A stretch of 64,000 nt of DNA from Rebecca billardiae RCC1528 (GCA_965240325.2 OZ251222.1:4464001-4528000); one strand, 5' to 3'; positions 398-52,070 are shown, counted from the stretch's first letter. Notes: generated by a model not told the origin, from the sequence alone. Numbers and translations are program-made.

Positions 398-635
398 TGT
401 GCAGCCTAAATATGCATCCGGCTACCTAAGGCTACCAATCGTCATGATGCATTAATAATATATTAATAATGGCTCGGCCGGCTAAACGTATAGTTATTCG
501 TCTAAGACAATGATGAAAGTAGGCCCTAGAACGTATTTCTGATTGCGACTAGCTATACAGTGGTCGGCGACTAAGCATCGGACGCAGTGCCATCTGCGGT
601 GACGATGTACATAGATATATTAATAAATATATATA

Positions 636-772
636 TGTCTAGGCTCTAGCCGTCCTCGTGAACGCCGACGCCAACTGCAGGCCGAAGGTGGGGGCTGATG
701 AGCGGCGCTGGCGCCCGGCGTTCTTGTCGTCCTCTTAGACAATCAGATATTGTACCAATAACCCCACATATA
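636..772. mobile_element. Short copy of a dispersed repeat (ends shared with 10738-11298)
   Basis: TCTAGCCGTCCTCG at 645 and 10741; CGTCCTCTTAGACAATCAG..ATATTGT.CCAATAACCCCACATATA at 728-772 and 11252-11298; both follow TA runs. Confidence 0.5.
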
Positions 773-1511
773 ATTTTATATATGACACAGGCACGACGGG
801 GCGCAGCCGAGCTCTGCTCCTGATTCGTCTGTCGAAGTAAGACTTAGTAGTGATTAGTGATTGGAGACGGAGTTCTGTCCGCGGAGCGCGTTGGCTGTGG
901 GTGAGAGAATAATCGTCGCCGATCAGCTCGCGGATCACACGGAGGTAGTGGGCGTCCAGGGATGCCGCTGTGCCTGTATATTTGATTTTGCAGTCGTCGC
1001 CGCCGCGCGGCCGCTTGGTCATCATGTAGTTGCCCGCGTCGGTCCGAGGCTGTTCAAGTTAATGATGCCGTAGTGCAAATAGTCAGGATGTGGTTTCCCT
1101 GGCCGGTGTGCGCGGTCTTGATGATTTTCAGATCGGATTTACTATGATGATCGCGGATCCGGACATCGTCACGACTGCTCAGTGCTCGCGGACATCATCA
1201 CTAGTAGTAGATCGACGATAACGAAGTGATCATCAGCACTCGTCGGGGCTCCATATCAAGCCCGCGGGCCGCCTGAAGGCCGAACCCTGCCCCTGGTGAC
1301 CGGTCATCACCGCTGGCTGCCCGGCAGGCGGCCTCGGGCAGGCGGCAGCCTGGTGGCGATCACGGTCGATATCATCGTGATCGTCGCGGACGGATTAAAT
1401 ACTGGCACTGATGCTGTATCGGCTGTCTATCGTCCGCGCAGGTGGAGTGACGACGACTGACGTGGATGGATGGTTGTCCGAGCCGCGAGGATGACGCCGT
1501 GACGCGTCATG

Positions 1512-1611
<100 letters not shown>

Positions 1612-1830
1612 TCAAAGCTGACTCACTGCTGTCGTGTCTACTGACTAACTTGCATTCTGACGATTGCACTGCGCGTGCTGTAATACGCGACGACGAATAA
1701 TAAATACGTAGTCGCGAATAATGCCGGCGATCGAATGAATCATTATTAGTCATGCGCGGCATCCGCCGCCGATTCCGCGCGAGGCTCCGGCGACGAGGAC
1801 GCGCGAGTATTCTCTCGTCGATCGATCTCG

Positions 1831-1878
<48 letters not shown>

Positions 1879-1890
1879 GTCTCTCTCTCT
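1831..1890. repeat. (TC)n microsatellite
   Basis: Direct observation; decays out to about 1965. Confidence 0.9.
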
Positions 1891-2178
1891 AGCTAGCTCA
1901 TCTTTATTAGTTATAGCTCTGCTCTCATCAGTCTCTCAGCTCTCTCGTCTCTCTAGCTCTCTCTGACTCTGTCTGACGGCCTGACTCGTGATCACTCTCG
2001 TCTAGCTGCCTCTCACCAATATATAGATTAATATAGAATAATTTGCTCATCATTGCTGAGTAGCTTAGCGCAGGCCTCATCAGTAGCGCTACGGCACTCA
2101 CGAGTCACGGTCCCGTCGGAGACGGAATAATCATAGTTAAGTAGTAGTATTAGTATATATATATATATAGTATCCAAG

Positions 2179-2478
2179 ATGGGGCGGGACACGTGGCGCG
2201 CGCGCCTCAGCGCGCCCTCGCGCCCCGCCGCCGAGCGCGCGCTGCTCGGCACCATGCGGCGCGAGCTGGGCATGCGCTGCCTGCGTGGCCAGGCCAAGAT
2301 GCTCATCGCCCGCGCGCGCATGGCGCACGTGCGCCCGGGGGCACGCGCCCGCGGGGGCACTGCGTACGACGACTGCTTCGAGACGACGGCTGACGACGCG
2401 TGGCACCGCGACCACCGCGGTGGCGCGCGCGCGTCGACGCCAGACGGTGCGTCGAGCTTCCGCTCGGCGATGGAGTGA
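2179..2478 (+). pseudogene. Possible 5'-truncated remnant of a non-LTR (restriction-like endonuclease type) retroelement ORF
   Basis: Coding-like codon usage between TA tracts; RRELGMRCLRGQAKMLIAR resembles the C-terminal 'RlsvalqRgnA.ll' motif of such elements (recall only). Confidence 0.3.
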
Positions 2479-2670
2479 TGGGCGACTACGAGGGGGGGGG
2501 GGACGACGGCGAGGAGCGCTGATCCTGATGTTTGTCTCTGCTGCTCGATCTGCCGCTACAGCTTGCTGACTCTGACGCCTGCCCGTTGCATACCACGTCG
2601 TTAATATATATATATAGTATAGCGCGCTATATAGTTGAATATATAATAATATATTATATATAATATGTAT

Positions 2671-4216
2671 GGCGGGCCGTAGGTCCGCCCCTTGTAGTGC
2701 CCGGGAAAAAGATAAGAAAAGAAAAGAATAAAGAAAATCGCCTCGCCAAGAAAAGAAAATCGCTTCGCTCACTACCGGGCGCCCTCGCAGCTCCCACTGG
2801 GGACGCTCGGCCGAAAAAGGGTTGCCCATGGCGCGGAGCGCGTGGGCGGCGCGCGCCACATCCAACGCCGGCGCGGACATCGTGAGAGGACTCCCGAGGG
2901 GAGTTTTCGCCCGATTCGCGATTGCTGCCCTCGTCGTCTCGCGTGAAGGTCGAACGGGGCCCAAATCGACGCGTTTGGAGCGGTACGCTCGGCGCGTCGA
3001 CACGATCGTGAGACCTGGGGCGGTCCTCGCCCGACGTGCACGTCGAAAGCTCGCACCGGCCATAGCATCATGCGCTGCGCACGATGACCGCCTCGCGCGA
3101 TCCACCGTCGCGCGTCGGGCTCGGTGCGAGAAAGCCCTCATCACGAGGCGTCTCGCGGGCGGGAAGCGCCATCGCACGCGACGCAAGATTTGGCGCGGCC
3201 TTCTGAACTCGATCGCCGGAATCCGCGCACCGGACTCAGTCATTGCTCGCGGTCCGGTCCCTCAGCCGAAGCCCACGTCCGGCCTGCATGGCGTCGACGG
3301 TGACCAATGCGACGGAAGCGCAGCGCCAACGGCGTACGACGCGCAGCGGACGCACCTCCCGGGTCTGTCGCCGTGGCAGCAACCGCGTCATCGCGAGTTG
3401 GCGACCCTCGCCGCAGCGCGACACAGACAAGCCCGTGATGCCATCCGCAGAGAGATGAAACGTCGAGCATGCAACATCGCCGCGCCATGGCCTCGTCCAT
3501 GGCGCAGGCGCTGCGGGACGAGGCGGAAGTCGTCACGCCGGTGACGGATGCGCTGGGATTCGTGTGCTCGCGTGAGCAGCGCTTGCCCACTCTCGATCGC
3601 GAGTGGCACACGCTGTCGCTGTGCGCGCGCGCGCGCACAACCAACAGCTCCTCGTGCCGCCGAGCACACGAGCGCCAGACCTGTCGAAGATGCGAAGAGC
3701 GACGACCGCGTAAACGTCAACGCGCTCGTGCTCAGCGTGGCGGCCGTGTACGACGTCAACGCGACCTGCGCCGAGCCCATCATGCCTGGAGCGGACACCG
3801 GCAAGCATCCTCGCGACGACCGCTCTCGGCTGGCGGCAGGAGGACATGCACATGATCTACTCTGGCGGCTTCGTCGGCGGCGAGGCGCTCGATTACGCCG
3901 TCGCGGTCGACATGCGGCACATACAGCGCGTACCCGCGCTCGCGCGGAGCAACGGGCTACCCGGCCCGCCCCGCGTGCTGCACATTCCCTCGTGGGTGTG
4001 GGGCCTCGCTGATGCACATACGAGCAGTACAGACTGCAGACCGGTCACGGTGTAACTACACGTCGGGGAGCCAACTTCACGTGTCACTGGTCCTTGCACT
4101 CGACTGTCCGTCACCCACGGCCACGAGCGAATGTGGAAAGACGCGAACCCGCAGAGGATACATTGCGACAGCACTGGCACGGCCCGCCGACCCCCCCGCC
4201 CGCCAGGGCACAGTTT
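2671..4216 (+). mobile_element. Degenerate transposon-like unit, copy 1 of a tandem ~1.55-kb duplication
   Basis: Aligns end to end with 4226-5757; GGCGGGCCGT at start is the inverse of ACGGCCCGCC near the end; frameshifted ORF remnants; TA-rich flanks. Confidence 0.65.
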
Positions 4217-4225
4217 AATATATAT

Positions 4226-5757
4226 GGCGGGCCGTGGCGGGCCGTAGGTCCGCCCCTGGTAGTGCCCGGGAAAAAGATAAGAAAAAGAAAAGGAAAAAGA
4301 AGAAAATCGCCTCGCAAAGAAAAGAAACTCGCCTTGCTTGCACTACCGGGCGCCCTCGCAGCTCCACTGGGGACGCTCGGCCGAAAAAGGGTTGCCCATG
4401 GCGCGGAGCGCATGGGCGGCGCGCGCCAAATCCAACGCCGGCTCGGACATCGTGAGAGGACTCCCGAGGGGGTTTTCGCCCGATTCGCGATTGCTGCCCT
4501 CGTCGTCTCGCGTGCAGGTCGAACGGGGGCCAAAGTCGACGCATTTGGAGGTACGCTCGGCGCGTCGACACGATCGTGCGACCTGGGGCGGTCCTCGCCT
4601 GACGTGCACGTCGAGCGCTCGCACGGGCCATAGTATTAAGCGCTGCGCACGACAACCACCTCGCGCGATCCACCGCCGCGCGTCGGGCTCGGTGCGGAAA
4701 GGCCCTCATCACGAGGTGTCTCGCGGGCGGGAAGCGCCATCGCACGCGACGCAAGATTTGGCTCGGCCTTCTGAACTCGATCGCCGGAATCCGCGCACCG
4801 GACTGTCGCTCGCGGTCCCTCAGCCCGAGTGAAGCCCACGTCCGGCGTGCATGGCGTCGACGGTGACCAATGCGACGGAAGCGCAGCGCCAACGGCGTAC
4901 GACGCGCAGCGGACGCACCTCCCGGGTCTGTCGCCGTGGCAGCAACCGCCTCTTCGCGAGTTGGCGACCCTCGCCGCAGCGCGACACAGACAAGCCCGTG
5001 ATGCCATCCGCAGAGAGATGAATCGTCGAGCATGCAACATCGACGCGCCATCCTCGTCCATGGCGCAGGTGCTGCGGGACGAGGCGGACGTCGTCACGCC
5101 GGTGACGGATGCGCTGCGAATCGTGTGCCTGCGTGAGCAGCTCGTGCCCACTCTCGATCGCGAGTGGCACACGCTGTCGCTGTGCGCGCGTGCGCGCACA
5201 ACCAACAGCTCCTCGTGCCGCCAAACACGCGGGCGCCAGACCTGTCGAAGAGGCGAAGAGCGACGACCGCGTGAACGTCAACGCGCTCGTGCTCAGCGTG
5301 GCGGCCGTGTACGATGTCAACGCGACCTGCGCCGAGCCCATCATGCCCGGAGCGGACATCGGCAAGCGTCTTCGCGACGACCGCTCTCGGCTGGCGGCAG
5401 GAGGACATGCACACGATCTACTCTGGCGGTTTCGTCGGCGGCGAGGCGCTCGATTACGCCATCGCGGTCGAGATGCGGCACATACAGCGCGTACCCGTGC
5501 TCGCGCGGAGCAACGGGCTACCCGGCCCGCCCCGCGTGCTGCACATTCCCTCGTGGGTGTGGGCCTCGCTGATGCGCGCGAACGCGTACCGCACCGCGTG
5601 GGAGTGAACTGACTACTGAGTCACCTAGGTGTCACTGGTCCGACTGTCCGTCACCCGGCCACGAGCGAATGCTGTGGAAAGACGCGAACCCGAAGAGGAA
5701 ACATTGCGACAGCACTGGCACGGCCCGCCGACCCCCCCGCCCGCCAGGGCACAGTTT
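4226..5757 (+). mobile_element. Degenerate transposon-like unit, copy 2 (Ulp1-protease-like remnant)
   Basis: Same ends (...CGCCAGGGCACAGTTT); remnant EDMHTIYSGGFVGGEALDYAI...RVLHIPSWVWASLM loosely resembles the start of a peptidase C48 domain. Confidence 0.6.
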
Positions 5758-6064
5758 TATATTAATTTCCATTCTAGCTCGATCATGATGAACGGTTACG
5801 GTAGCCGGCTGGCACGGCTCAGACTGTCAGGCTGGCACCGTGTCACTGTCCGTGTTCCGGCTCGGGAGACTGGCGGAGTCGCTGCGGGACGCCGGACGCC
5901 AGTGCGGCGGGGCGCCGGGGCGGCACTCGCTTCGTGGCACTCGTGACTCGACGCCTTGAAGCCGTCCGAGCGGCCTGGCACGGCGGGCGATGATGAAGTT
6001 CGGCGGCGTCGGGCCGCAAGCCCCACAAATAACACTAGGTGATGACGCTTGACGCTGCCACTCG

Positions 6065-9040
6065 TCAGTGGTGATGCCGCCTGCGATGCCGGCTGCGATC
6101 GGTCATCACCGCGACCGGCCGGCTCATGGGCGGGCTCGCCTTGAAGTAGTTGCTCGGATCCTCCCACGGACGCGAGCCAGGGTCATCGCGCGCGTTGGTG
6201 TACGGCAGGTACTGCGAGGACGGACCGGAGTACGCCTCCGCGTTCCACGACGAGTCGACGGGCGCGGGGCACGGAGCGAGGAAGTCGAGCGCGGGCGGCA
6301 CCTTGACGTTCACGCGCCCCGCCTCCTTGACGGACGCGGGGGCATTCTTGACGCGGAAGAAGTTGCCCATGCCCAGCACGAGGTGAGCCTCCTGCACCGC
6401 CGCGCGCGCGCGCATCGTGGGCCGGGCGCGCGCCACCACGCGGCGCCGGTGAGAAGTGGTGGTGGTGGCGGCTCGGCGCGGCGCGCGCACCATGTGGCAG
6501 TGCATGAACCACACGCCCGGGTTCTTGGCGACGAAGCGCAGGTACGCCCACGACTTGTACATGACGGTCACGGTGTCGACGCACAGCGCGTCCTTCTCGT
6601 TGAGGCTGGCGCGGTCGCGCTTGGGCTCGTACCGGCCCTCGCCCATGCCGAGGACGTGGAAGCAGTGGCCGTGCAGGTGCCACGGGTGCACCTCGGTCGG
6701 GTCGTCGTTGTTCAGCACGAGGTCGACCACCTCGCCGTACTCGATGTCGAACGCGGCGGCGCCGAACTGCTTGTCGGCGGACTGCTGCCCGCGCCGGATC
6801 AGGTTGTACGCGAGCGAGGCGTCGAGCTTGGTGCCGCCCTGCTCCATGAGCGACTGCGCGAGGAAGGGCACGCGCGGCTTGTCCGCGGTGGGCAGCAGCG
6901 GGCTGCCCACCTCGCTGAACGAGATGTTGTACACCGCCCAGCGGAACCACTCCGCGTCCTCGGGCGCGGACACCATGCCCGGCCCGACCAGCTTCGCCGT
7001 CTCGGGCGGCAGCTGGCCCGGCCACCACACGTTGAAGAGCATGTCGATCGGCTCGCGCAGCTTCTGCCCGCGCTCGGCGCGCGGGACGGGCGGGTTGTAG
7101 CCGTCCACAAAGCTGCCCTGGCCCCGGCTCGGCGGGAGCGGCTTGAACATCTGCGTCTCGATGCCGACCCGCACCATCTTGTCGCGCTCCTCGTTCGTGA
7201 GCGACTGGTACCAGTTCACGCCCGTGTACCCGGAGTCGAGCTCGTCGCCCGCGCCCACGTAGGACAGGACGGCCTGCGCGGCCGGCAGCCTGTAGTTGAC
7301 GTTGGCGCCTGCGCGCGCACGGCGGTCGCGTCCGCGCGTGGGCGAGCGCCCCAGCACGCGCGCCCCCTCCCCGCCCCGCCCCGCCGCCGCCACCCGCGCG
7401 CGCGTCCGCGGCCGCGCGCGCGCGGCCGCACCGGTGCAGAAGTCCTTGAGCGTCATCGGCCCGCCCCACTTGACGTCCGGGTTGCCCACGAGCGGGGCGA
7501 GCTCGTTGGTGCACTCGGGCGAGGCGGCCTGCCGCCCCCACGTGGAGACGACCATCGGGTAGTTGGTGCCCGTCTGCCCGCTCGCCTCGAGGACGACCGA
7601 GTAGCGCTGCCCGAGGTTGATCATCAGCGAGTCCACCTTCGTGGGCTGCAGCCACACGCCGCCGGCCTGCACCACCGTCATCGAGTGCCCCGGGATCGTC
7701 AGGTTGTACGGCAGCAGCGCCCCCGCCGCCACGATGCGCAGCAGGTACGACTTGCCCGGCTCCACGAAGAAGCGGCTGAAGTAGTTCACGTCCTTCTTGT
7801 TGCACGGCGCGGCTGGGAGCTGGCGGTCGCCGGGCAGCCAGCCGGGGCCAGCGAGGCCCTTGCCGTTGACGAGCAGCGACTGCGGGTTGCCCACCCAGTA
7901 GCTGCGCCGAGCGCGCGCAGGGAAGAAGCCCGCAAGCGCGCGAGAGCCCGGTCAGGCGCGCACGCGCCGTGGCGCGCGGGCAGCGGGCGCGGGCACGCGC
8001 GCTCGCGGCGCGCGCGCATACGGGTACTGGCGCGAGAGGCCCCACTCCATCGAGTCGCCCGAGTGGTTCCACCAGCCGTGGATCAGCATCACGGGCAGCT
8101 CCTCGTCGTAAGGCGGGATGCCCTTGGGCCGCTCGGTGCCGCGCCGTGGTAGGATCACAAACGCGCCAAACATGCCGTCCTGCACTGCGCACCGCGGGGG
8201 CGGCGGGCGCGGGCACGGGCGGGCGGGGCGCGGCGGCGGGGGGGGGGGGGGGGGGGCACGCGATGGGAGGGTCGCGCGCCACGCGCGCGCGTGTGAGGGG
8301 GAGATGCCGATGCGCGCCGCTCGCCCGCGCCGCCGCCGCGCGCTCCGCACAGCCGCGCGCCGCCGGGCCGCGCGCGCGCACTGTCCAGGCCCATGTGCGC
8401 GTGCCACCAGTGGGTGCCCGGCGCCTCGTCCGCCGTGTCGATCACGTACGTAAAGCTGCGGCACGCGCGGCGGCACGCGGTCGCGCGCCTCGCGTGAGCC
8501 ACCCGCGTCCCGCGGCGTGCGAGGCCCGAGGCCGCGCGCGCGCAGCGCGGCGCACCTCTGGTTGAAGCCGATCGGGCACTGCGTCACGTAGCCGACGCCG
8601 TCGTACCACTGCTTGCCGCGCATCTGGAGGCCGTGCCAGTGCACGGTCATGCCCTGCCGGATGTTGTGCCCCTGGTCCTTGCGCACCATCAGGTTTGTCA
8701 CGTGCACCTCCACAATGTCGCCCTGCTCGACGCGCACCTCGGGGCCGGGGAATTGGCCGTTGCACGTGATGTGCTGCCGCTTGTTCCCGTGGCGGTCGGT
8801 GCCACCGTAACAGTCCGGGTCGAGCTGGCGGTTGATCGTGAACGTCCAGTCGTACTTGACCACGCGCCTCGAGTTGCGGTGCCAGGGATGCCCCTCGAGC
8901 GACGCGTCACGGTCGCCGAGCATCAACTTGTCAGGGTCCTCGCGTACCGGCTTCGCGAGCCAGATCGCGCACAGCGCAAGAAACGCGAGAGAGACGAGCG
9001 CACACGCGCCCATCACAGCCGAGCGGCGAGCCTCCGCCAT
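6065..9040 (-). CDS. Multicopper oxidase (laccase/ascorbate oxidase-like), N-terminal signal anchor, 5 introns
   Basis: Copper motifs TVHWHG, WWHAH, HPWHLHGH, WFMHCHM|EAHLVLGM; GT-AG introns about 8456-8555, 8186-8381, 7902-8021, 7308-7433, 6392-6490. Confidence 0.95.
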
Positions 9041-21117: not shown

Positions 21118-21563
21118 ATGCACTCGCCGCGGCTCACGTCGCCGAGCGCGGTGGCCAAGGCGGCGGTCGGCGAGCCGATCGCGCGCAAGGCGATGAAGCA
21201 CAACGCGAACGCCGATGTGAAGCTCGCGCGCGCGCGCCAAGCCATCCTGCGCCGCTGGAAGCTGCGGCAGCAGCTGCGCGAGAGGCAGCAGCTCGCGCAC
21301 ACGCAGCGGACGGCGGTCGCCGCCACCTCGCCCGGCCCGCCGCCCACGAGCCACGCCGAGCCGTCCAAGCGCCGCGCGTCGAGCGAGGCCGACGACGCCC
21401 TCGGCGCCCTCCGCGCGCGCATCAGCGCGCTGCGCGCGGACAACAGCGATCTGATGCGCTCGCTCGATCAGGCGGACGCGCGCGCGCACGCGACCGCCGC
21501 CGTGCTCGCGCGCAGCGTGCGCGAGTGCGAGGACGTCGAGCTCGGCGCGCTCGTGCACGCGCA

Positions 21564-21595
<32 letters not shown>

Positions 21596-23306
21596 ACTCG
21601 TCCGAGGCGGAGGGTCGCTCCCTGCGCTCACAGCTCGAGGGCGCGCGCGCTGAGCTCGAGGGCGCGCGCGCCGCCGCGGCCGCGCGCGAGGCCGCCGAGC
21701 AACGCAGCGCGGCGCGCGCGCTCGCGGCCGAGCAGGCGGCGAACGGCGCCGAGGCGCGCGCGCGCGAGGCCGAGGCGCGCGCGCACGACGCGTGGCGCGA
21801 GCTGGTGGGTGCGCGCGCCGAGGCGGCCGCTGAGCGCGAGGCGGAGGCGGTGGCGCACGCCGCGGCGCTCAGCGAGGCGCGGGGGGCGGCGCGCGACGCC
21901 GGCGCACGCGCGGACGGGGCCGAGGCGCGCGCGGCCGAGGCGGAGCGGCGCGCGGCCGAGGCGCGCCGCGCGGCCGACGCGGCGCGCGCGGACGCGGCCG
22001 GCGCGGCCGCGCGCGCGGACGCGGCGGACGCGGGCGCGGCGGACGCGGAGCGCCGCGCGGACGCGGCCCTCGCCCGCCGCGCCCACGCCGAGGCCGAGGA
22101 GCAGCAGGCGGCCACGCGCGCGGCGGAGGCGGAGGCGCGCGTGGCGGCCGAGGTGGCGGCGTTGCGCGCCGAGGCCGAGAGCGCGCGCCTCAAGGCGGCG
22201 GAGGCGGCGCAGGCGGCGGCGCGCGCCGCCAACGCCGCCGCGCGCGCCCAGGCGGGCGAGGAGGCGGCGCGCCGAGCGGCCGCGCGCGCGGAGGCGGAGG
22301 GCGGCGCGCGCGCGGACGCCGCGCTCGCGGCCGCGCGCGCGGACGCGAGCACGCTGGCCGACGCGCTGAGCGCCGCGGAGGCCGAGGCGCGCGCCGAGCG
22401 CGCGCGCGCCGAGGCGGCCGAGGCGCGCGCGGCCGGCGCGGACGCGCGCTGCGCCGAGTGGAAGGCCCGCGCCTCGGCCGCACTCGACGAGCTGAGCAGC
22501 GGCGCGCGCGCGGCGGCGCACGGCGCGGACGCGGCGCTCGGCAAGGGGGCGGCGGCGCGCGGCGCGCCCGCGCCGGCCGCGCACCTGCCGGCGGCCGCGG
22601 CGGCGGCGCGCGCGCGCGCGCGGGACACGCCGCGCCCGGACGCCCCCGACGTGCCGCGCGCAGCCGCGCCGCACGAGGCAGGCGGCGGCGCGGCGGCGGC
22701 CGCGGCCGCCCCGGCCCCGGCGCGCGCGCCGGGCGCTGCGCCCAAGGGCGGCGGCGGGGCGGCGGCGGTCGGCTCGCCGCCGGCGCGCCGCGGCGTCGAG
22801 CACGCGCCCTCGCTGTACGAGCGTGCGCGCCGCGGTGCCAGCGCCGCCGCGCGCCCCTCGCCCCCGGCCGCCTCGCCGCCGCCGCCGCCGTCCTCGCCGG
22901 CGCTGCCGCCGTCCGCAGAGCAGCCGCAGCCGGCGCGCGCGGCGCCGGCGAGCGGCGACGCGCCGTCGGCAGCGCCGACGGCGGGCGCGCAGCCGGCGGC
23001 GCCGGCCGACGACGCGAGCCGCGCGGCGCTCGCCGTGAGCACGGCTCTCGCGCGGCGCGCCGAGCGCGAGCGCCGCTGGCTCGCCTCCGAGATGGCGGCG
23101 GTCACGGAGCTGCACGCCGCGGCGGTTGCGCGCGCGCGCTCGCGCTCGCAGCCGCGCGCCGCGCCGCCGCCCGCCGCCGGCGCGGCAGCCGACACGAACG
23201 CGAGCGAGCGGCTGCGCCGCTCTGCGGCGCAGCGCGAGCAGTTGCAGGCGGCGATGCGCACGAGCGCCGCGCGCTACGCCAAGCTCGACGGCGCTCGGCG
23301 CGACTC

Positions 23307-44344: not shown

Positions 44345-44602
44345 CAAGGGGTCTTACAAATAACCCACTGGGGAGGAAGCCCCCAGTGCGAGCTTGGACC
44401 CATGCTCTGCACCCTGGGGTTTGAGAGTCCGGTGTTTTTGCAGGCTTCAGCGGTACTTTTCTCGCTGAAACGCCTATTCTGGGCGATCTCCGGACAAAAA
44501 GCCACAGTGGCCAGCCTTCCAAAACACCGGACACTCGAACCCCAGGGTACGGAGCATGGGTCCACTTGCCTTCCTCCCCAGTGGGTTTTTAAAGTCTCCT
44601 TG
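44345..44602. mobile_element. Fold-back / MITE-like element with ~90-100-bp imperfect inverted arms
   Basis: 44362-44379 is the inverse of 44570-44587; 44395-44446 is approximately the inverse of 44513-44564; lower GC; next to a TA tract. Confidence 0.7.
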
Positions 44603-45323
44603 ATCCAACACCATGGGTCGTCTGGCTGGCAGCGGTACTCTCCGCCATCGCACTCGCTTCGCGCGAGTACTATCACGCCTTAACCAAGAGTGTGCACGTT
44701 GAATCATAGTATCCGTAAACTGTACGCATAGTCACACGTTAAGAAACCGGGACTACGTCGTCGCGGCTGACGAGTGGTCCGCCGAGGCGTGCGGACTGAC
44801 GTGGTCCCCGTGGGACGCTCACGCGGCGCGCGGCCTGACTACAAGTACTATCTCGCCTGCCTGAGCTCAGTGTGCGTCTCTTATTCTTAGTAAACTGTAC
44901 AGGCTGACAAGTCCCGCCTTCTGGCCTGATGACTGACTCCTGGCCAGTCAGCACCGCAGCATCCATGCAACATCACTATACCAGATTTGCTCCAAAATGG
45001 CCCAAAAGTTATTTATTTCTTCATCGGCCTCGCCGGCCGGGCCTAAAGACTGGCCGCAGCGGGGGGCTCAGCCCCCCCGTGCGCCCCCCCGGCGCCTGGC
45101 CCTGCGCGGCGGGCGGACCTAGCTAATATTATAAGAAGAAGAAACTCGTCAGACTCCGTATAGGCGCTCGGGCTACCGAACGGCGCTATGAATAATAAAT
45201 TGACGACGGACTAGGCTGCACTAGCCGCGTGAGACTGAGATCTCTGACTTCTTACTTGCCGGTTGCCCGCAATTGCCCGTGTACTGAGTGCTGATTAGCC
45301 TATGATTCACTATAAATAATGCC

Positions 45324-45357
45324 CACAGCAACGATTTCTTTTTTAAAGCGGCCGTTA
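45324..45357 (+). repeat. Left TIR CACAGCAACGATTTCTTTTTTAAAGCGGCCGTTA
   Basis: Reverse complement of 51545-51578 with one mismatch. Confidence 0.93.
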
Positions 45358-45879
45358 AGGAAACTCCAACAAATTGATTTTCGGCCGTTAACGGCTCAAC
45401 CCGGGCGTCCGGCCACAATCCCGAGAGCCTCCTCGCGCCGCTCGGACCAACCGACGGTCGTCCAGAGCTCCGACGCGAAGTTGAAAGTCCCGGTGCGCGC
45501 GTGCGCCGTGCGTGCGCGTGTGGCGGCGTCCACGTCGCGGCTGCGCCACCGGTGCTCTAATCGCGGGTGTTCCCCAACCTATCCCCCACCTGCCCCGCAC
45601 CCGCTCCGCGTCCCGACCCGCCACGCCGATCTACTTTGCTAGGTCTGTTCGTAACACGGTGCGAATCTGCGCCCGCCTGCACGCCGCCGCGCGCGGGGAT
45701 GCAGGAAGTGTATGGAGGGGCGCGGAGTTTGTATTCAGGCGGCGGGTTACTCGTGATCCACGCACATGCTCAGCGGGAACGCTTACTTTTGCATGGGTGA
45801 CCGGGAATTTGCATCAGACTAACTTGCTGCGGCTGCGCCCGGCGGCGGCCGCGCGGGACCGCGCTCGCCGCGCGCAGCA

Positions 45880-46737
45880 ATGACGACGGCTGTGCTTACC
45901 GTGGGCAAGGGCAAGCGTTCCTGCGCGAAGCCGAAGAAGGTCAAGCTGCAGCGGAAGGGCGGCTACGGCATCGGGCGCAAGGTCTCTGCCGCATCTGTGC
46001 GGCGGCGCATGGCCGCGGCGGCCGCGGAGAAGGCGGCTGAGCACGAGACGCTCATGCTGCGCGCGCGCGAGGCGGCGAGCGAGGTGGACCACTCGATCAT
46101 GCCGAACGAGAACTACCTGGCGGAGGTCAAGCGCAAGGTCAACAACTTCGTCGCCATCAAGGGCAGCCGGAAGAAGGGCAACCTGCTGCGCAAGGCCAAG
46201 CTGGCGCTGTTCCCGCGTGACGCCCTCTACTCGCCGATGTTCACCTCGCTCGACGACCAGGGCGTCGTGCACGAGACGCGAGAGAAGGACCGCACGCGGC
46301 GCACCGTGAGCTCGTACCAGCCCGAGCGCATCTCGACGTGGCTCAACCTGGGCATGCGCCGCGTCCCGAAGCCGCTGCGGGCGAACGCGCTCGGCGGCGC
46401 GCGCACGGACCGGCACCTCTCGGCGATCAACACGGTGCACTCGCTCTCGATCGAGCACACCGAGATGCATCGGCTCGATCCGGACGGCGCGTACCAGCAG
46501 TTCGCGCACGTGCGCGTGGGCGTGATCTCGCTCAACGCGCAGGGCGGCCTGCACGCGCCACAGGACGCGCAGGGCGGCGTGAGCGTCGACGCCGAGCGCT
46601 ACGCGCTGATGCAGCCATGGCGCTTCAAGAAGGAGAAGGGGCGCGCTGACGTGAGCGGCGAGCTGCTCAAGGTGTGCGCGCAGGGCGTCTCGATGCGCCG
46701 CGGCGGAGGCGGGGCTGGCGGCGCACGCCGTCTGTGA
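45880..46737 (+). CDS. Transposon ORF1 (basic, 285 aa) or first exon of the transposase
   Basis: ATG ORF with strong coding bias and Lys/Arg-rich NLS-like N-terminus; candidate donor AAG|GTGTGC at 46672. Confidence 0.7.
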   Translation: MTTAVLTVGKGKRSCAKPKKVKLQRKGGYGIGRKVSAASVRRRMAAAAAEKAAEHETLMLRAREAASEVDHSIMPNENYLAEVKRKVNNFVAIKGSRKKGNLLRKAKLALFPRDALYSPMFTSLDDQGVVHETREKDRTRRTVSSYQPERISTWLNLGMRRVPKPLRANALGGARTDRHLSAINTVHSLSIEHTEMHRLDPDGAYQQFAHVRVGVISLNAQGGLHAPQDAQGGVSVDAERYALMQPWRFKKEKGRADVSGELLKVCAQGVSMRRGGGGAGGARRL

Positions 46738-49700
46738 CGAAGGGCCCGTCGGAGCTCACGGGCGCGCCGCCGGCAGCGCCTGCCGCGGCGCCCGCCGCGG
46801 CGGCACCGGCGGCGCCGCCCGAGTCCGACGTCTCACGGCGCAAGCGCGCGGACTGGAAAGCGCGCCGCGCGCAGCGCGAGCAGCTGACCGCCACTCGCCG
46901 AGCAGCGAGCAGCGCCCGATGGCGTCGCGCGCCAGCTGGTGACGGCGCGGTCGCGCCGCATCCCCCCCTCGATCTCTCTGCCCTCGATCCCACGCATGCC
47001 CATCTGCATTCTCATTCTCAGCCTCTCTCGCATGTTCCAGTCCTCGGTCTCACGCCCGGCCTCTGCGCCGACGCGCCATCCGATCCATCGTCCGCCGCCG
47101 TGATGCCCTACGCGGTCGCGGACACCCAGCCGCTGCCTCCGTTGGGGCCGCCGCCGCTGCCGTCGCTTCCGCCACCGCCGCAGCTGCCGTCGGCGCCTCC
47201 GCACCTGCCTCCGCCGCTCGTGCAGCCGCCGCAGCCGCGGCCGCGGCCGCGGCCGCGGCCGCAGCCGCAGCCGCTGTCCTCGCCGCATGATGCCGCCCGT
47301 CCACCGACCGCGCGCGCGCTCGCTCTCCTTCGAGCTGATGGCGGCGAGGCGGCGGCATCAGCCGCCGCCGCCGCCGCCGATTTGTCTCCCGCCGTCGTCG
47401 CTGCCCGCTTCTCGTCTCTTCCCGCTCACGCCGACCACCTCGTCTTCTCGCCCGCCACTACCAACGCCTCCTCCGCCTTGAGCTTTCCTGCTGCCGCTGC
47501 GCCGTCGCCCGCGGTCACGCGCAGCGCCTCCCGCCAGCCCGCGCCGCCACTCCTCCTCGCTGGCGCGGCGGCGCAGCCGTTCGTCGGTGGGTCGGCGGAA
47601 GAGCTGCTGCCGCCGAGGTCACCTGCCGTCGCCTCGCCCGCCTTCATGTCGCCGCCGCCTGCCGTGCTGCTCTCGGCCGCGCCCACCCGCCAGCGGCCTC
47701 TCACGCGCTCGGCTGGCAGCGTGGCGCCGACGCCCGAGGCAGAGGCGGACGAGCAGACAGCACGGGGTCGAAGGCGCATGGCCGAGCTGCAGCACGTGGC
47801 CGAGCTCGAGCAGCAGTTGCGGCGCTCGCACAGCACGCGCAGCGTCCCTTCCGAGCTCGAGCTCACCTCGCTGCGCACACGTGTGACCGAGCTCGAGCAC
47901 TTCAACGGCGAGCTCGAGCGCGAGCGCGACGACGCGGTGCGGCAGCGCGAGGACATCGTCAACTCGGCCGCCGTCGATCTCGAGCCGGTTCTCGACGTGG
48001 TGATCGCCGCCGTCAAGCTCGAGTGCGAGAACATCGAGCGCGAGGCCCTCGACCGGATCGCCGCCGCGCGCGCCGCCGCTGCTGCCGCGGAGAGGCGCGC
48101 TGTGCTCGCCGGGTACCGCGCCGGGCACAGCGCGGATGCGCGCACCCGCCACGACGCCGAGGCGGAGCAGGCGCAGGCGAAGCTTCGGCGCGATCTCGAA
48201 GAGGCGAACGCGCGGGCCGCAGCTGCGCAGCGCGCCGCCGACGCGCAGCGCGATCGGGCCCTCGAGTTGGAGCGCCGCCTCACCGCGACCGAGCACATCG
48301 CCGCTGACGCGCTGAGCGGCGTCGAGCACGAGCTCGCGGCTGCGCTGCACGCGCAGCAGCTGCTCGAGCAGCAGTGCGCGCACGCCCAGTCGCTCTGCGA
48401 CGAGCAGCAGTCGCAGCTTGTCGAGCTCAAGCGCGACAAGGACGCCGCGCGCAAGCGCGCCGACCGAGCCGCCGGCAAGTTCGAGCACCTCGCCGAGCTG
48501 AACGGGCTGGACGGCGCTCATCGGCAGCGCGCTCAGCGCCCATCTCTCTCGGTCTCGAGCAACGCGTGCCGCAAGCGCAGGCGGGGGGAGGCGGACCATA
48601 TCGAGCACATCCTGCGTGGCACGCCCGACGACGTGATGGACCTCGTGCTGCACGAGATGCTCGAGGGCGCAGACGACGGCTCGCGCAAGCCGTGGGCGAG
48701 GCACGCCTACCTCCAGCAGCGCCGCGGCGCAGTGGGCGTTGTGCGCGAGATTCAATCTCATCAGACGCACCACGACGTCGCCGGCTACCTCGTCTCGAAG
48801 AACGTCACGGACGCGCAGTTCGACACGTGGCGCGAGTGGGTGGGGAAGGAGATCCACCCGGTGACGGGCGAGCACTCGGCTCGCACCGTCTTCCGCGGCG
48901 GCTTCGGCCGCGAGCCGATCCGCCACCCGATCCCGCCGCCGGCGGCTGGCTCTCGAGAGGTCGCGCAGCGCGATCGCGAGCACGCGGGCGCGGGCGTGCT
49001 CATGATCGGCAGCGAGTCGGCGGCGCGGCCGTGGGCGCAGGCCGTGCACGCCGTGCTGGATCGCTCGGAGCGCAACGGCAAGTCCGCGCGCCCGCGCGGG
49101 CAGCCGCACGTCCTCCTCCTCTCGGCGGACGCGGGCAACACGGCTCACTCGCGCACGGCCACGATCGCCATCGTGCGCAACGGCTGGGGCGTCAACTACG
49201 GCGCGCTCGCGTCGTCAGAGGCGATCGCCATCTCGGAGCGGCCGGACTCGGACATGTCCGAGTTATGGAGTGCGCACGCCGACGCGATCAATGACGTGAT
49301 CCGGAGCGGCCTGCTTCCGCCGCGACCGACGCCGCCTGCTGCCGCCACCGCACGTGTGGCCGGCGCGGCCGGCGGCGCGGCCGCGGCCGTCACAGCCGGC
49401 GCGGCCGGCGGCGCGGGCCGCGGCGAGGCCCGCGGCGCGGCCGGCGGCGCGGCCGGCGGCACGGCCGGCGGCACGGCCGGCGGCACGGCCGGCGCGGGCG
49501 GCGCGGGCGGCAGCGGCAGCGGCGTGGCTGGCGGCACCGCCGGCGCTGGCGTCCGCGCGGCCGGCGGCGCGGCCGGCGGCGCGGCTGGTAACGCGGGCGC
49601 GGGCGCTGGCGGCGGCGCGGGCGGCGCGGGCGGCGCGGGCGGCAGCGGCAGCGGCAGCGGCGTGGCTGGCGGCACCGCCGGCGCTGGCGTCCGCGCGGCC

Positions 49701-51419
49701 GGTGGCGCGGCCGGCGGCGCGGCGAGCAGCGCGGCTGGCAACCCGAGCGCGGGCACGGCCGGCGGCGCGGCCGCCGCGGCCGCCGCGGCCGCCGCGGCCG
49801 CCGCGGCCGGCGGCGCGGCCGGCGCGGCCGGCGCGGCCGGCGCGGCCGGCGCTGCCGGCGCGGCGGGCGGCGCGGCCGGCGGCGGTTTTGGCGGCGGCGG
49901 CGAGGCGGCCGACTACGCGGAGGAGCAGAAGGCCATCATCACGTACACCGGCGATTATGTCAACCTTGCCAGCCTCGCCGGCCAGGGCTCGCACAACGTC
50001 TCGCCGCTCCGCTTCAACGTGTGGGCGGTCAAGGAGGCGGGCGCGGACGGCGGCTCGCCTCAGTGGCGGCTGCGCACGTACAAGCGCGCGCGCGCGCTGT
50101 GCCACGCGGACCCGGGCGTGACGTGCCCTGCGTGCAAGGTCACGCCTGCCGACCAGGGCGAGTGCGACGCCGAGATGACCAAGCGCCGCCGCCTTCTCGC
50201 CGACGACTCGAAGGACGCCGAGCGCATCGTCGACCAGAAGCTGCACGAGAACCAGTGGCTGCTACCGCAGCTGGAGCTCGAGCACGTCAACTACTTCCCC
50301 GGCATCATGCACTTCAAGCACGACACTTTCAAGCCGGTGCTGTCGGCGCTGTGGAGGGAGGTGGACGAGCTGTACGGCCGCGACGCGCCGCTCACCAAGT
50401 ACGACCTGATCGTCCTGTTCAAGAACGCGGGCGTGCCTGTGCGAGTGCCCAAGCGGCGCACGCGCACCAACGAGATCGGCGTGCCCGACCTCCGCGGCGA
50501 CGGCATCTCGCTGCTGCGCACGCACGCGGTCTTCTGGGCGTTGGTGCAGGTCGTGTGGAAGATCGACGCGGATCTCGACGGCGCGAGCAGCGCGGGCGCG
50601 GCGGACAGCGGCGACGAGGACGCGCGCATCTCGGACATGCAGGACGAGGAGGAGCGCGAGATGATGGACGAGATCGGCTTTGACGACGAGGCGCAGTTGA
50701 AGGCCGAGATCGCGGACATGCCGCGCATGGCACTCTTCTGCCGCCTGCTCATGCTCACGTGGCAGCTGCACGACCTCGTCTCCTCGCGCGGCTACACGGA
50801 CGATGACGATGGCCGCGCGAAGCGTGCGGACGAGGTTGAGGCAGCCGCGACGGCGTGGGTCGAGGCGCTCGACCTGTTCGTCCTCAAGCCGGTCACCTCG
50901 CAGTACAAGACGATCGCGCGGTTCGTCTTGCCTCTGCTGATCAGGCGGTGGGGCCACCTCGTGCAGCTCGCGGACGAGCAGGTGCAGGAGCACTTCGTGC
51001 AGGTGACCAAGCGGGCGATGCCGCTCGTGAACGCGCGCAAGTCGCTCGACTCGTTCGTCCGCGAGTATGCCGAGGGGAAGAAGTCGACGGTGCAGCCGCA
51101 CATCTCGACGGCCGCGCAGCTCCTGCGCCGCGTGTCGCTTGCGACGTGGGCGGAGGAGGAGTTCGGCGACAAGGTGCGGCGGCTCTGGCTGAAGAAGGAG
51201 GGCAAGCGGCAGCGCGAATGGCAGCGCAAGGCGAAGGCCGGCGCGCACGACCTGGTCGACGAGTACATCGCGGCGCGCAAGCTCGTGCGCGAGGAGGCTG
51301 GGCTTCCGGAGGAGGACTTGTCGGCACTCAAGAGCAAATTGAGGGCGGCGGCGCGCTCGGCCTCGGCGACGGTGAGCGACGGCGCGGATGTCGCGCGCGA
51401 CGGCAGCGGGGCTGGGTAG
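46674..51419 (+). CDS. DDE transposase with RAG1-core/Transib/Chapaev-like motif order
   Basis: LLLSADAG (D1), YTGDYVNLASLAG (D2), CPAC, HENQ..LPQL...FPGIMH, LRGD, YKT..RFVLPLLIRRWGHL..LADEQVQEH (E); uninterrupted 4.7-kb frame; true start uncertain. Confidence 0.8.
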   Translation: MRAGRLDAPRRRRGWRRTPSVTKGPSELTGAPPAAPAAAPAAAAPAAPPESDVSRRKRADWKARRAQREQLTATRRAASSARWRRAPAGDGAVAPHPPLDLSALDPTHAHLHSHSQPLSHVPVLGLTPGLCADAPSDPSSAAVMPYAVADTQPLPPLGPPPLPSLPPPPQLPSAPPHLPPPLVQPPQPRPRPRPRPQPQPLSSPHDAARPPTARALALLRADGGEAAASAAAAAADLSPAVVAARFSSLPAHADHLVFSPATTNASSALSFPAAAAPSPAVTRSASRQPAPPLLLAGAAAQPFVGGSAEELLPPRSPAVASPAFMSPPPAVLLSAAPTRQRPLTRSAGSVAPTPEAEADEQTARGRRRMAELQHVAELEQQLRRSHSTRSVPSELELTSLRTRVTELEHFNGELERERDDAVRQREDIVNSAAVDLEPVLDVVIAAVKLECENIEREALDRIAAARAAAAAAERRAVLAGYRAGHSADARTRHDAEAEQAQAKLRRDLEEANARAAAAQRAADAQRDRALELERRLTATEHIAADALSGVEHELAAALHAQQLLEQQCAHAQSLCDEQQSQLVELKRDKDAARKRADRAAGKFEHLAELNGLDGAHRQRAQRPSLSVSSNACRKRRRGEADHIEHILRGTPDDVMDLVLHEMLEGADDGSRKPWARHAYLQQRRGAVGVVREIQSHQTHHDVAGYLVSKNVTDAQFDTWREWVGKEIHPVTGEHSARTVFRGGFGREPIRHPIPPPAAGSREVAQRDREHAGAGVLMIGSESAARPWAQAVHAVLDRSERNGKSARPRGQPHVLLLSADAGNTAHSRTATIAIVRNGWGVNYGALASSEAIAISERPDSDMSELWSAHADAINDVIRSGLLPPRPTPPAAATARVAGAAGGAAAAVTAGAAGGAGRGEARGAAGGAAGGTAGGTAGGTAGAGGAGGSGSGVAGGTAGAGVRAAGGAAGGAAGNAGAGAGGGAGGAGGAGGSGSGSGVAGGTAGAGVRAAGGAAGGAASSAAGNPSAGTAGGAAAAAAAAAAAAAAGGAAGAAGAAGAAGAAGAAGGAAGGGFGGGGEAADYAEEQKAIITYTGDYVNLASLAGQGSHNVSPLRFNVWAVKEAGADGGSPQWRLRTYKRARALCHADPGVTCPACKVTPADQGECDAEMTKRRRLLADDSKDAERIVDQKLHENQWLLPQLELEHVNYFPGIMHFKHDTFKPVLSALWREVDELYGRDAPLTKYDLIVLFKNAGVPVRVPKRRTRTNEIGVPDLRGDGISLLRTHAVFWALVQVVWKIDADLDGASSAGAADSGDEDARISDMQDEEEREMMDEIGFDDEAQLKAEIADMPRMALFCRLLMLTWQLHDLVSSRGYTDDDDGRAKRADEVEAAATAWVEALDLFVLKPVTSQYKTIARFVLPLLIRRWGHLVQLADEQVQEHFVQVTKRAMPLVNARKSLDSFVREYAEGKKSTVQPHISTAAQLLRRVSLATWAEEEFGDKVRRLWLKKEGKRQREWQRKAKAGAHDLVDEYIAARKLVREEAGLPEEDLSALKSKLRAAARSASATVSDGADVARDGSGAG

Positions 51420-51544
51420 CGGGAATCAGGCAGCTGACGGTTAGGGCATGCAGGGGGGACTAGTCGCGCGCGCGCGCCGCCCGCTGGGCGCGCGCGCGCA
51501 GCGCATAGTAATTTTCCGTAAAATAATCCGGCCGATGGACACGC

Positions 51545-51578
51545 TAACGGCCGCTTTAAAAAAGAAGTCGTTGCTGTG
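51545..51578 (-). repeat. Right TIR
   Basis: TAACGGCCGCTTTAAAAAAGAAGTCGTTGCTGTG. Confidence 0.93.
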
Positions 51579-52070
51579 GCCATCATTTAACAGGCTGTGG
51601 CCGCCTCTGAGCCCTCTGACTAGTCTGAGAGTGAGAGTCCCGCGGGTGGCGGCCCGCCGAGCGGTGCCCCGGATCACGGACTCTGACGGCGATATGATAC
51701 TACTGAATGATTATGGGCTGCTGCCGCTGGCACGTCCGCGCGGGCCTGCTTCACGCGGCCCGTGTCCGTGACTACGCTGTCCAACCGCAGCAGTCACATC
51801 GGCCGGCGCCGCCGCCGCCTCCATCGGAATGGCTGGCGAAGTTGCGGCGTTACAAATCGGCCAGTGCCCGGCTGTGCCCGCAGCATGCTGGCGTCAGCCG
51901 TCACCCTGAGCCACCGTCGTCGCCGCTTGCTCGGCGTCTTCCGAGCGAGCGCTCGCAGCCGCGTCCCCAGACGACCCGCCCGCGCAGACGGACGGACCAC
52001 GGCGGGCAGCTGGCGGCGCGCTCGTGCCGCGTGCCACAGGCTGCGCGCACGACTTGGTGTCCCGCGCCGC

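Follow-up and report, generated by a model that had tools for sequence, protein, structure and literature searches.

The 64,000-nt stretch of DNA analyzed here (the window; one strand of GCA_965240325.2 OZ251222.1:4464001-4528000, from Rebecca billardiae RCC1528) contains, at positions 45324-51578, an intact-looking element of 6,255 bp that is bounded by terminal inverted repeats (TIRs). This element is very probably a complete, autonomous-looking cut-and-paste transposon from an undescribed and rare lineage of the CMCT clade in a haptophyte (Pavlovales-type) alga. The CMCT clade joins EnSpm/CACTA, Mirage, Chapaev, and Transib as well as Plavaka, ESTA, and Lanisha (PMC12730594). Its members mostly have 5'-CA..TG-3' termini and target site duplications (TSDs) of 2-5 bp, and their transposases carry a C(2)C motif and an H(3-4)H histidine pair (PMC12730594). 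In the element we found the predicted fold, the C(2)C motif, the termini, and a 3-bp flanking repeat, the latter in one copy. It is an algal branch added to an already recognized group, and it is neither a new kind of element nor a Transib.

Predicted fold and conserved residues of the transposase

The fold of the transposase was explored using two AlphaFold models built from family alignments, one covering residues 640-1581 of the window protein and the other residues 230-858 of a compact relative, P0025. In both models the core displayed a predicted local distance difference test (pLDDT) score of 80-95, and strands and helices follow one another as in RNase H-like DDE enzymes. A Foldseek search of the PDB with the window model returned RAG1, BbRAGL, or HzTransib in all of the top 43 rows, with E values from 1.7e-3. 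In the VIA re-alignment, RAG1 gave a Z score of 16.1 over 413 residues, placing model residues 110-867 on RAG1 490-1008, while BbRAGL, HzTransib, and the P element gave 14.8, 13.0, and 8.3, respectively. A prefilter-free search of all 48,161 PDB representatives was performed with both models. The Z scores of the window and P0025 models were 15.4 and 18.3 for RAG1, 14.8 and 18.1 for BbRAGL, 10.0 and 13.0 for HzTransib, 8.2 and 11.3 for the P element, and 6.3 and 7.5 for Hermes. The structural alignments span 350-420 residues at 9-14% identity. The RNase H fold on which a preliminary description of this DNA had made its reading depend is therefore predicted by both models, with RAG1, BbRAGL, and HzTransib as the nearest solved structures.

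The same description had invoked a motif order shared by RAG1/Transib/Chapaev transposases, and the order D...GD..L...G...CxxC...H...E is indeed kept across the family. The first aspartate is invariant, and the second aspartate, the two cysteines of the C(2)C motif, and the candidate third acidic residue are each missing from at most one of the sequences compared when E1435 is taken as the latter (Table 1). Two further histidines are conserved, H1144 (12/13) and H1191 (14/15). The terminal helix of the P0025 model can be aligned as far as residue 976 of RAG1; judging from the alignment ranges, the NEQxQE motif would lie near RAG1 E962.

These results could be taken to mean that the element is a true member, or a sister, of the Transib/RAG1 lineage. 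The best solved structures are all RAG1, BbRAGL, and HzTransib, well above the P element and hAT, and the CACAG termini resemble the heptamer of the recombination signal sequence (RSS). However, to our knowledge no structure of a CACTA, Mirage, or Chapaev (CMC) transposase has been solved, and for this reason the PDB cannot separate CMC from Transib. The shapes nearest to the compact model in the ESM Atlas were unnamed eukaryote clusters, DUF1280, PF02992 Transposase_21, DUF1258, and RAG1, with template modeling (TM) scores of ~0.5-0.65, and the predicted models of PF02992, of the CACTA TnpD type, and of DUF1280 and DUF1258, which are Caenorhabditis families, are as near as predicted RAG1 or nearer. 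The best shape belonged to a streptophyte cluster without a name (TM 0.65 by query), which might, at a guess, be Lanisha-like. Moreover, no RAG1 match was found in Pfam at E values up to 10, the flanking repeat has 3 bp and not 5 bp, the ends are symmetric, and no Kelch/RAG2-like partner accompanies the transposase, ORF1 being without a Pfam match. Membership in the Transib/RAG1 lineage is for these reasons very improbable. Were it true, the element would throw direct light on the origin of V(D)J recombination; with the assignment to a separate CMCT lineage, the picture of that origin is unchanged.

Ends, flanking repeat, and boundaries

The 34-bp TIRs starting with CACAGC that had been described at first sight are 33/34 identical, and a comparable pair was obtained in 0/100 dinucleotide-preserving shuffles. 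Each TIR is built of a tip box (CACAGCAACGA), a T-rich spacer, and an inner box (GCGGCCGTTA), and the termini read CACAG...CTGTG. The GCC direct repeat reported outside both ends was also recovered. When flanking repeat lengths of 1-4 bp were compared, only 3 bp fits. A 2-bp TSD for this copy would require an extra unpaired base at one end, whereas the 3-bp reading requires none and is centered on a palindrome.

The inverted repeat delimited by the repeat finder extends 11 bp beyond CACAG (45313-45357 and 51545-51589, 93%). Since the symmetry continues past CACAG, a longer TIR starting AATAATGCC... with a TA duplication, as in Tc1/mariner or ESTA elements, was considered. This possibility was ruled out by two independent termini. 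The related element L001, from another assembly (GCA_046766215.1), ends in ...TCGTTGCTGTG, after which an unrelated flank (ATTAAC...) follows. The same 34-bp TIR was found on a contig of the public run X1, its loose ends falling precisely at 45324 and 45357. Outward of this TIR the sequence differs (...GAATAAG before CACAG), and inward it agrees with the right subterminal region. This contig is the right end of another copy of the element. Because the L001 and X1 ends both stop exactly at CACAG within unrelated flanks, the terminus is placed there, and the 11 bp of additional symmetry therefore belong to the target site.

Both TIR boxes, the CACAGC tip and the GCGGCCGTTA inner edge, recur in L001 and in the TIR of L004 (CACTGC...GCGACGTTA), a related element from a metagenome. 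Inward of the left TIR, at a distance of 26 bp, the GGCCGTTA box is repeated inside the 12-bp palindrome GCCGTTAACGGC. This box occurs three times in the window, always inside the element ends, which is weak support given that at least three copies were found in 6/100 shuffles.

Table 1. Positions of the features of the element in the window
Feature	Position	Strand	Remarks
Left putative 3-bp TSD copy, GCC	45321..45323		Directly outside terminus; center of 19-bp near-palindromic AT-rich target
Left TIR	45324..45357	+	34 bp; tip box, T-rich spacer, inner box
Second copy of GGCCGTTA box	45383..45395		Subterminal, inside 12-bp palindrome
ORF1	45880..46737	+	285 aa, ATG start; family-specific accessory protein
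ORF2, transposase frame	46674..51419	+	1,581 codons open; likely start GTG 46734 or conserved Met 47778
Predicted coiled coil	47778..48590	+	Upstream of core; heptad-like charged helical sequence kept in P0001, P0006, P0012, P0025, P0029
RAG1/Transib-fold catalytic core (predicted)	48918..51191	+	Model residues 110-867
First catalytic Asp (predicted), D819	49128..49130	+	Motif SxDAG; strand beta-1; invariant, 10/10
Degenerate 12-bp minisatellite, in frame	49361..49884	+	~44 copies; Gly/Ala-rich insert between helix alpha-1 and strand beta-4
Second catalytic Asp (predicted), D1094	49953..49955	+	Motif TGDxxNL...GxGS; just after strand beta-4; 11/12
C(2)C motif CPAC, C1151/C1154	50124..50135	+	14/15 each
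His pair H1213-x2-H1216	50310..50321	+	Motif MHxxHNxFD; 13/16 and 15/17
NEQxQE motif, candidate third catalytic acid E1435 or E1439	50976..50990	+	Start of late helix; 19/20 and 18/21
Right TIR	51545..51578	-	34 bp; one mismatch versus left TIR
Right putative 3-bp TSD copy, GCC	51579..51581		Directly outside terminus

The DNA to the left of the element was also inspected. Word depth in run X1 is 20-40x at 44700-45099 compared with 2-6x on the transposon, which indicates that this part of the flank is itself repetitive DNA; loose ends occur there at 44899 and 44975. A foldback (hairpin) element is found ~0.75 kb upstream of the transposon (44359-44590), with 52-nt arms of 88% complementarity (44395-44446 and 44513-44564) and outer 21-nt arms of 95% (44359-44379 and 44570-44590).

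Coding capacity

The element contains two open reading frames (ORFs), the upstream one of which was absent from the preliminary description. ORF1 has a GC content of 0.93 at third codon positions (GC3) versus 0.48 at second positions (GC2). Alignments were obtained to the L004 ORF1, to the final part of ORF1 in L001, and to the N-terminal regions of two gene models from Pavlovales. No match to ORF1 was found in Pfam (E values up to 10, Kelch included), the PDB, or the Atlas, and an exact-protein look-up returned no record.

ORF2 is the unbroken transposase frame of the preliminary description, which we confirmed as a frame of the DDE type. A Pro/Ala-rich low-complexity region is followed by the coiled coil and the catalytic core. 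Given the GC content of the window (72%) and of parts of the element (up to 86%), an open frame alone means little. Codon composition is more telling, with GC3 of 0.85-0.96 versus GC2 of 0.36-0.53 in ORF1 and in the structured parts of ORF2 (0.85-0.91 for GC3 in the coiled-coil region), and this is a signature of real coding in genomes of this type. No codon-position signal is displayed by the Gly/Ala stretch or by the first ~300 codons of ORF2. The pairwise ratio of nonsynonymous to synonymous substitution rates (dN/dS) versus L001 is ~0.69, a value that is uninformative because L001 is internally deleted and codon bias is extreme.

The stop of ORF1 and the start of ORF2 overlap by four bases, ATGA in L001 (162-165) and GTGA in the window (46734-46737). 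This suggests coupled termination-reinitiation, which would be unusual for a eukaryotic transposon. The first conserved methionine of ORF2 is found further downstream, at 47778. Two ways of fusing ORF1 with ORF2 were rejected. The 43-nt GT..AG candidate intron is not kept in L001, and no X XXY YYZ heptamer is present that could serve as a -1 slippery site.

Relatives and distribution

Relatives were sought with phmmer, using the C-terminal 497 residues against 1.84 billion protein cluster representatives. Only 31 proteins were retrieved, mostly fragments and all unannotated, and word-indexed protein searches gave one match or nothing further. Ten of the relatives were looked up, and they come from Pavlovales sp. 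CCMP2436 (KAJ1620815 and KAJ1628803), from transcriptomes of the Marine Microbial Eukaryote Transcriptome Sequencing Project (MMETSP), and from marine metagenomes. These sources point to a haptophyte-type alga as the host, and the presence of relatives in MMETSP transcriptomes shows that some family members are transcribed.

L004 lies on a metagenome contig of the Joint Genome Institute (JGI; Ga0181565_10011449), where positions 444-6400 make up a related element that is complete and has a length of 5,957 bp. It has a perfect 33-bp TIR starting with CACTGC (CACTG...CAGTG) and the same layout of ORF1 and transposase, the latter changing frame near 4800 through a frameshift or an intron. Relatives share the two-ORF layout, with ends of the form CAC(A/T)GC...CGTTA.

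The deposited Pavlovales models KAJ1628803 and KAJ1620815 (L002 10001-15325 and L003 10001-13928) jump reading frames across stops. These ORF1-ORF2 "fusion" models look like gene-caller artifacts, with introns invented on degraded transposase copies. A search for TIRs around both Pavlovales loci returned none. A scan of JGI metagenome contigs with the TIR pattern returned 21 loci, all of them chance matches, none of which extends into the inner TIR box; one of these loci (L005) lies on a bacterial-looking contig from a human-gut metagenome.

The scaffold that carries one of the Pavlovales models (L002, MU631495.1 of Pavlovales sp. CCMP2436) also contains, at 21524-23067, a 1.5-kb element with perfect inverted ends of at least 24 bp that start with CACACTACCGG. 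It is bordered by CCCGGG on both sides and may be a non-autonomous CAC-ended element.

Target site

The empty site was rebuilt by removing the element and one GCC. The result, TAAATAATG-C-CATCATTTA, is an AT-rich sequence of 19 bp that is palindromic at 8/9 positions around the middle base of GCC. Equally palindromic positions make up 0.14% (0.0014) of the window and 0.3% (0.003) of AT-rich context. A palindromic empty site fits a symmetric enzyme that makes a 3-bp staggered cut. The half-site ATYATTTA is matched at 6/8 positions in L001 and at 3/8 in X1, and because these two other half-sites match so incompletely, any target preference is loose.

A bolder interpretation would see in the element a lineage of superfamily rank near the base of CMC plus Transib, choosing an AT-rich palindromic target (about TAAATRAT-NNN-ATYATTTA) in a genome of 72% GC, with ORF1 as a dedicated DNA-binding partner. 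We regard this as quite unlikely. If true, it would provide an outgroup that helps to root the ancestry of the RAG1 fold, as well as a naturally site-selective transposase with this fold.

Placement and integrity of the element

Judged by its ends and TSD, the element behaves like CACTA or Chapaev3, while its predicted fold is about equally near to RAG1/Transib and to CACTA/Mirage-type transposases. The preliminary description had proposed a divergent lineage. The divergence stands, in that no described family is matched by sequence. A specific tie to RAG1/Transib is overstated, since structures predicted for the CACTA/Mirage type come about as close as RAG1. For CACTA and Chapaev3, CAC termini together with a 3-bp TSD are normal. 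The pairing of RSS-like ends with a 3-bp TSD, which that description had singled out, is therefore no anomaly, CA..TG termini and TSDs of 2-5 bp being the norm in the CMCT clade (PMC12730594).

Several observations weigh against a complete transposon of a separate CMCT lineage. The placement rests on the predicted structure and on the ends and TSD because no sequence link to any CMCT family was found: no Pfam family was matched at E values up to 10 in the 32 sequences scanned, and the family profile had no sequence match in the PDB. The histidine pair is spaced H-x2-H and not H(3-4)H as in the clade. The 3-bp TSD is based on one full copy only, and L004 has no clean TSD (TCA before the element and ATC after it), being located in an (ATC)n tract. 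In the contigs of one sample (run X1), no empty-site allele, joints, or excision footprint was found for this copy. With respect to activity, the long ORF2 frame lacks an ATG at its start, where the ATG of L001 is replaced by GTG (46734), a minisatellite of 524 bp places ~175 Gly/Ala-rich residues inside the RNase H fold, and no RNA run containing this element was found. The minisatellite insert has pLDDT of 24-36, is disordered in the model, and is absent from all relatives.

The first group of these points bears on whether the element is a very divergent CACTA/EnSpm, Chapaev3, or Mirage element inside CMC proper, and not a branch of its own. The CAC(A/T)G termini (CACTG in L004), the 3-bp repeat, the two ORFs, and the repeated subterminal box would all be at home there, and the predicted shapes of PF02992 clusters rank with the nearest. 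Yet PF02992, DUF4218, DUF1258, and DUF1280 gave no match to any of the 32 sequences at E values up to 10, the best shapes in the Atlas belong to unnamed clusters and not to PF02992, and the spacing of the histidine pair differs. An origin inside CMC proper is thus possible but on balance unlikely, and a separate CMCT lineage is preferred.

The second group raises the question of whether this copy is a dead relic whose frame is open only because stops are infrequent at a GC content of 72-86%. With regard to activity, caution is called for by the GTG in place of an ORF2 start codon and by the minisatellite within the fold, and the missing codon-position signal in the first ~300 codons of ORF2 and the lack of an RNA run containing the element agree with a relic. 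On the other hand, all catalytic and zinc-type residues are intact, GC3 is far above GC2 in ORF1 as well as in the structured regions of ORF2, the TIRs and the flanking repeat are preserved, and further copies are present in run X1. A dead relic is therefore unlikely. The near-identical TIRs, the intact flanking repeat, the intact catalytic residues, and the second copy together with diverged variants in X1 argue for an insertion that would be recent. This makes "young, possibly active," as the element had been called from its sequence, a plausible label.

Proposed mechanism and significance

For a complete and autonomous-looking transposon of this kind, the following course of transposition can be proposed. 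The transposase, probably as a coiled-coil dimer, would bind the two-box TIRs, possibly with ORF1 as a DNA-binding partner. A DDE-type cut would then take place at the CAC ends, possibly with a hairpin on the flank as in RAG and Transib, and integration would follow, with a stagger of 3 bp, at a target that is AT-rich and roughly palindromic (about TAAATRAT-NNN-ATYATTTA).

With the element, the predicted RAG1/Transib-type fold reaches the haptophyte algae, in a lineage for which sequence methods provide no link to catalogued families. This indicates that part of the diversity of protist transposons is visible by structure only. A further deep branch also becomes available with which the CMC/Transib/RAG1 tree may be rooted. 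Moreover, an intact and apparently recently amplified copy offers itself for assays of excision and integration, in algae for which genetic tools are scarce.

Comparison with known systems

The element has in common with RAG1, BbRAGL (ProtoRAG), and HzTransib (4WWX, 6DBx, 6XNx, 6B40, and 6PQN-6PQY) the predicted pre-RNase H, RNase H, zinc-motif, helical-insert, and C-terminal regions. Further points of likeness are the order D, D, E, the C(2)C motif after the second D, and the ends starting with CAC. However, there is no detectable sequence similarity to these proteins. The 3-bp flanking repeat contrasts with the 5 bp of Transib, and the rebuilt target site is centered on a single base. The histidine pair, spaced H-x2-H, comes soon after the C(2)C motif, with ~220 residues separating it from the E, in contrast with RAG1 and Transib. 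A second gene comparable to RAG2 is lacking, ORF1 having no Pfam match; instead, the element carries the additional upstream ORF1 and a long coiled coil.

The RSS-like character that had been attributed to the ends holds for the first five bases. The heptamer CACAGCA agrees with CACAGTG at 5/7 positions, with only CACAG in common. It does not hold further inward, where no ACAAAAACC-like nonamer was found at 12 or 23 bp of either end. The ends are symmetric, without the 12/23 asymmetry of RSS and Transib ends, in which a CACNNTG heptamer is accompanied by an AT-rich nonamer, and the inner box GCGGCCGTTA follows 17 bp after the heptamer at both.

CACTA/EnSpm, Chapaev3, and Mirage elements resemble the element in their CAC(A/T)G termini, short (2-3 bp) TSD, two ORFs, and, with weak support, repeated subterminal box. 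The predicted shapes of PF02992, DUF1280, and DUF1258 place CACTA/EnSpm and Mirage-type transposases near it as well, with TM scores of 0.4-0.63. The difference from these groups lies in the sequences, as 0/32 of those scanned match PF02992, DUF4218, DUF1258, or DUF1280, and ORF1, which has no Pfam match, is unlike the TnpA-type proteins of CACTA/EnSpm.

Finally, ESTA, Plavaka, and Lanisha were compared by description only. TA TSDs are made by ESTA, Plavaka occurs in fungi, and the description of Lanisha is from a moss (PMC12730594; Repbase Reports 2020). All three were recognized mainly via remote similarity of the RAG1-like or EnSpm-like kind (PMC12730594; Repbase Reports 2020). The element is like them in being divergent and in having CA..TG ends and a short TSD, and it differs from them in its hosts, which are haptophytes and marine plankton.

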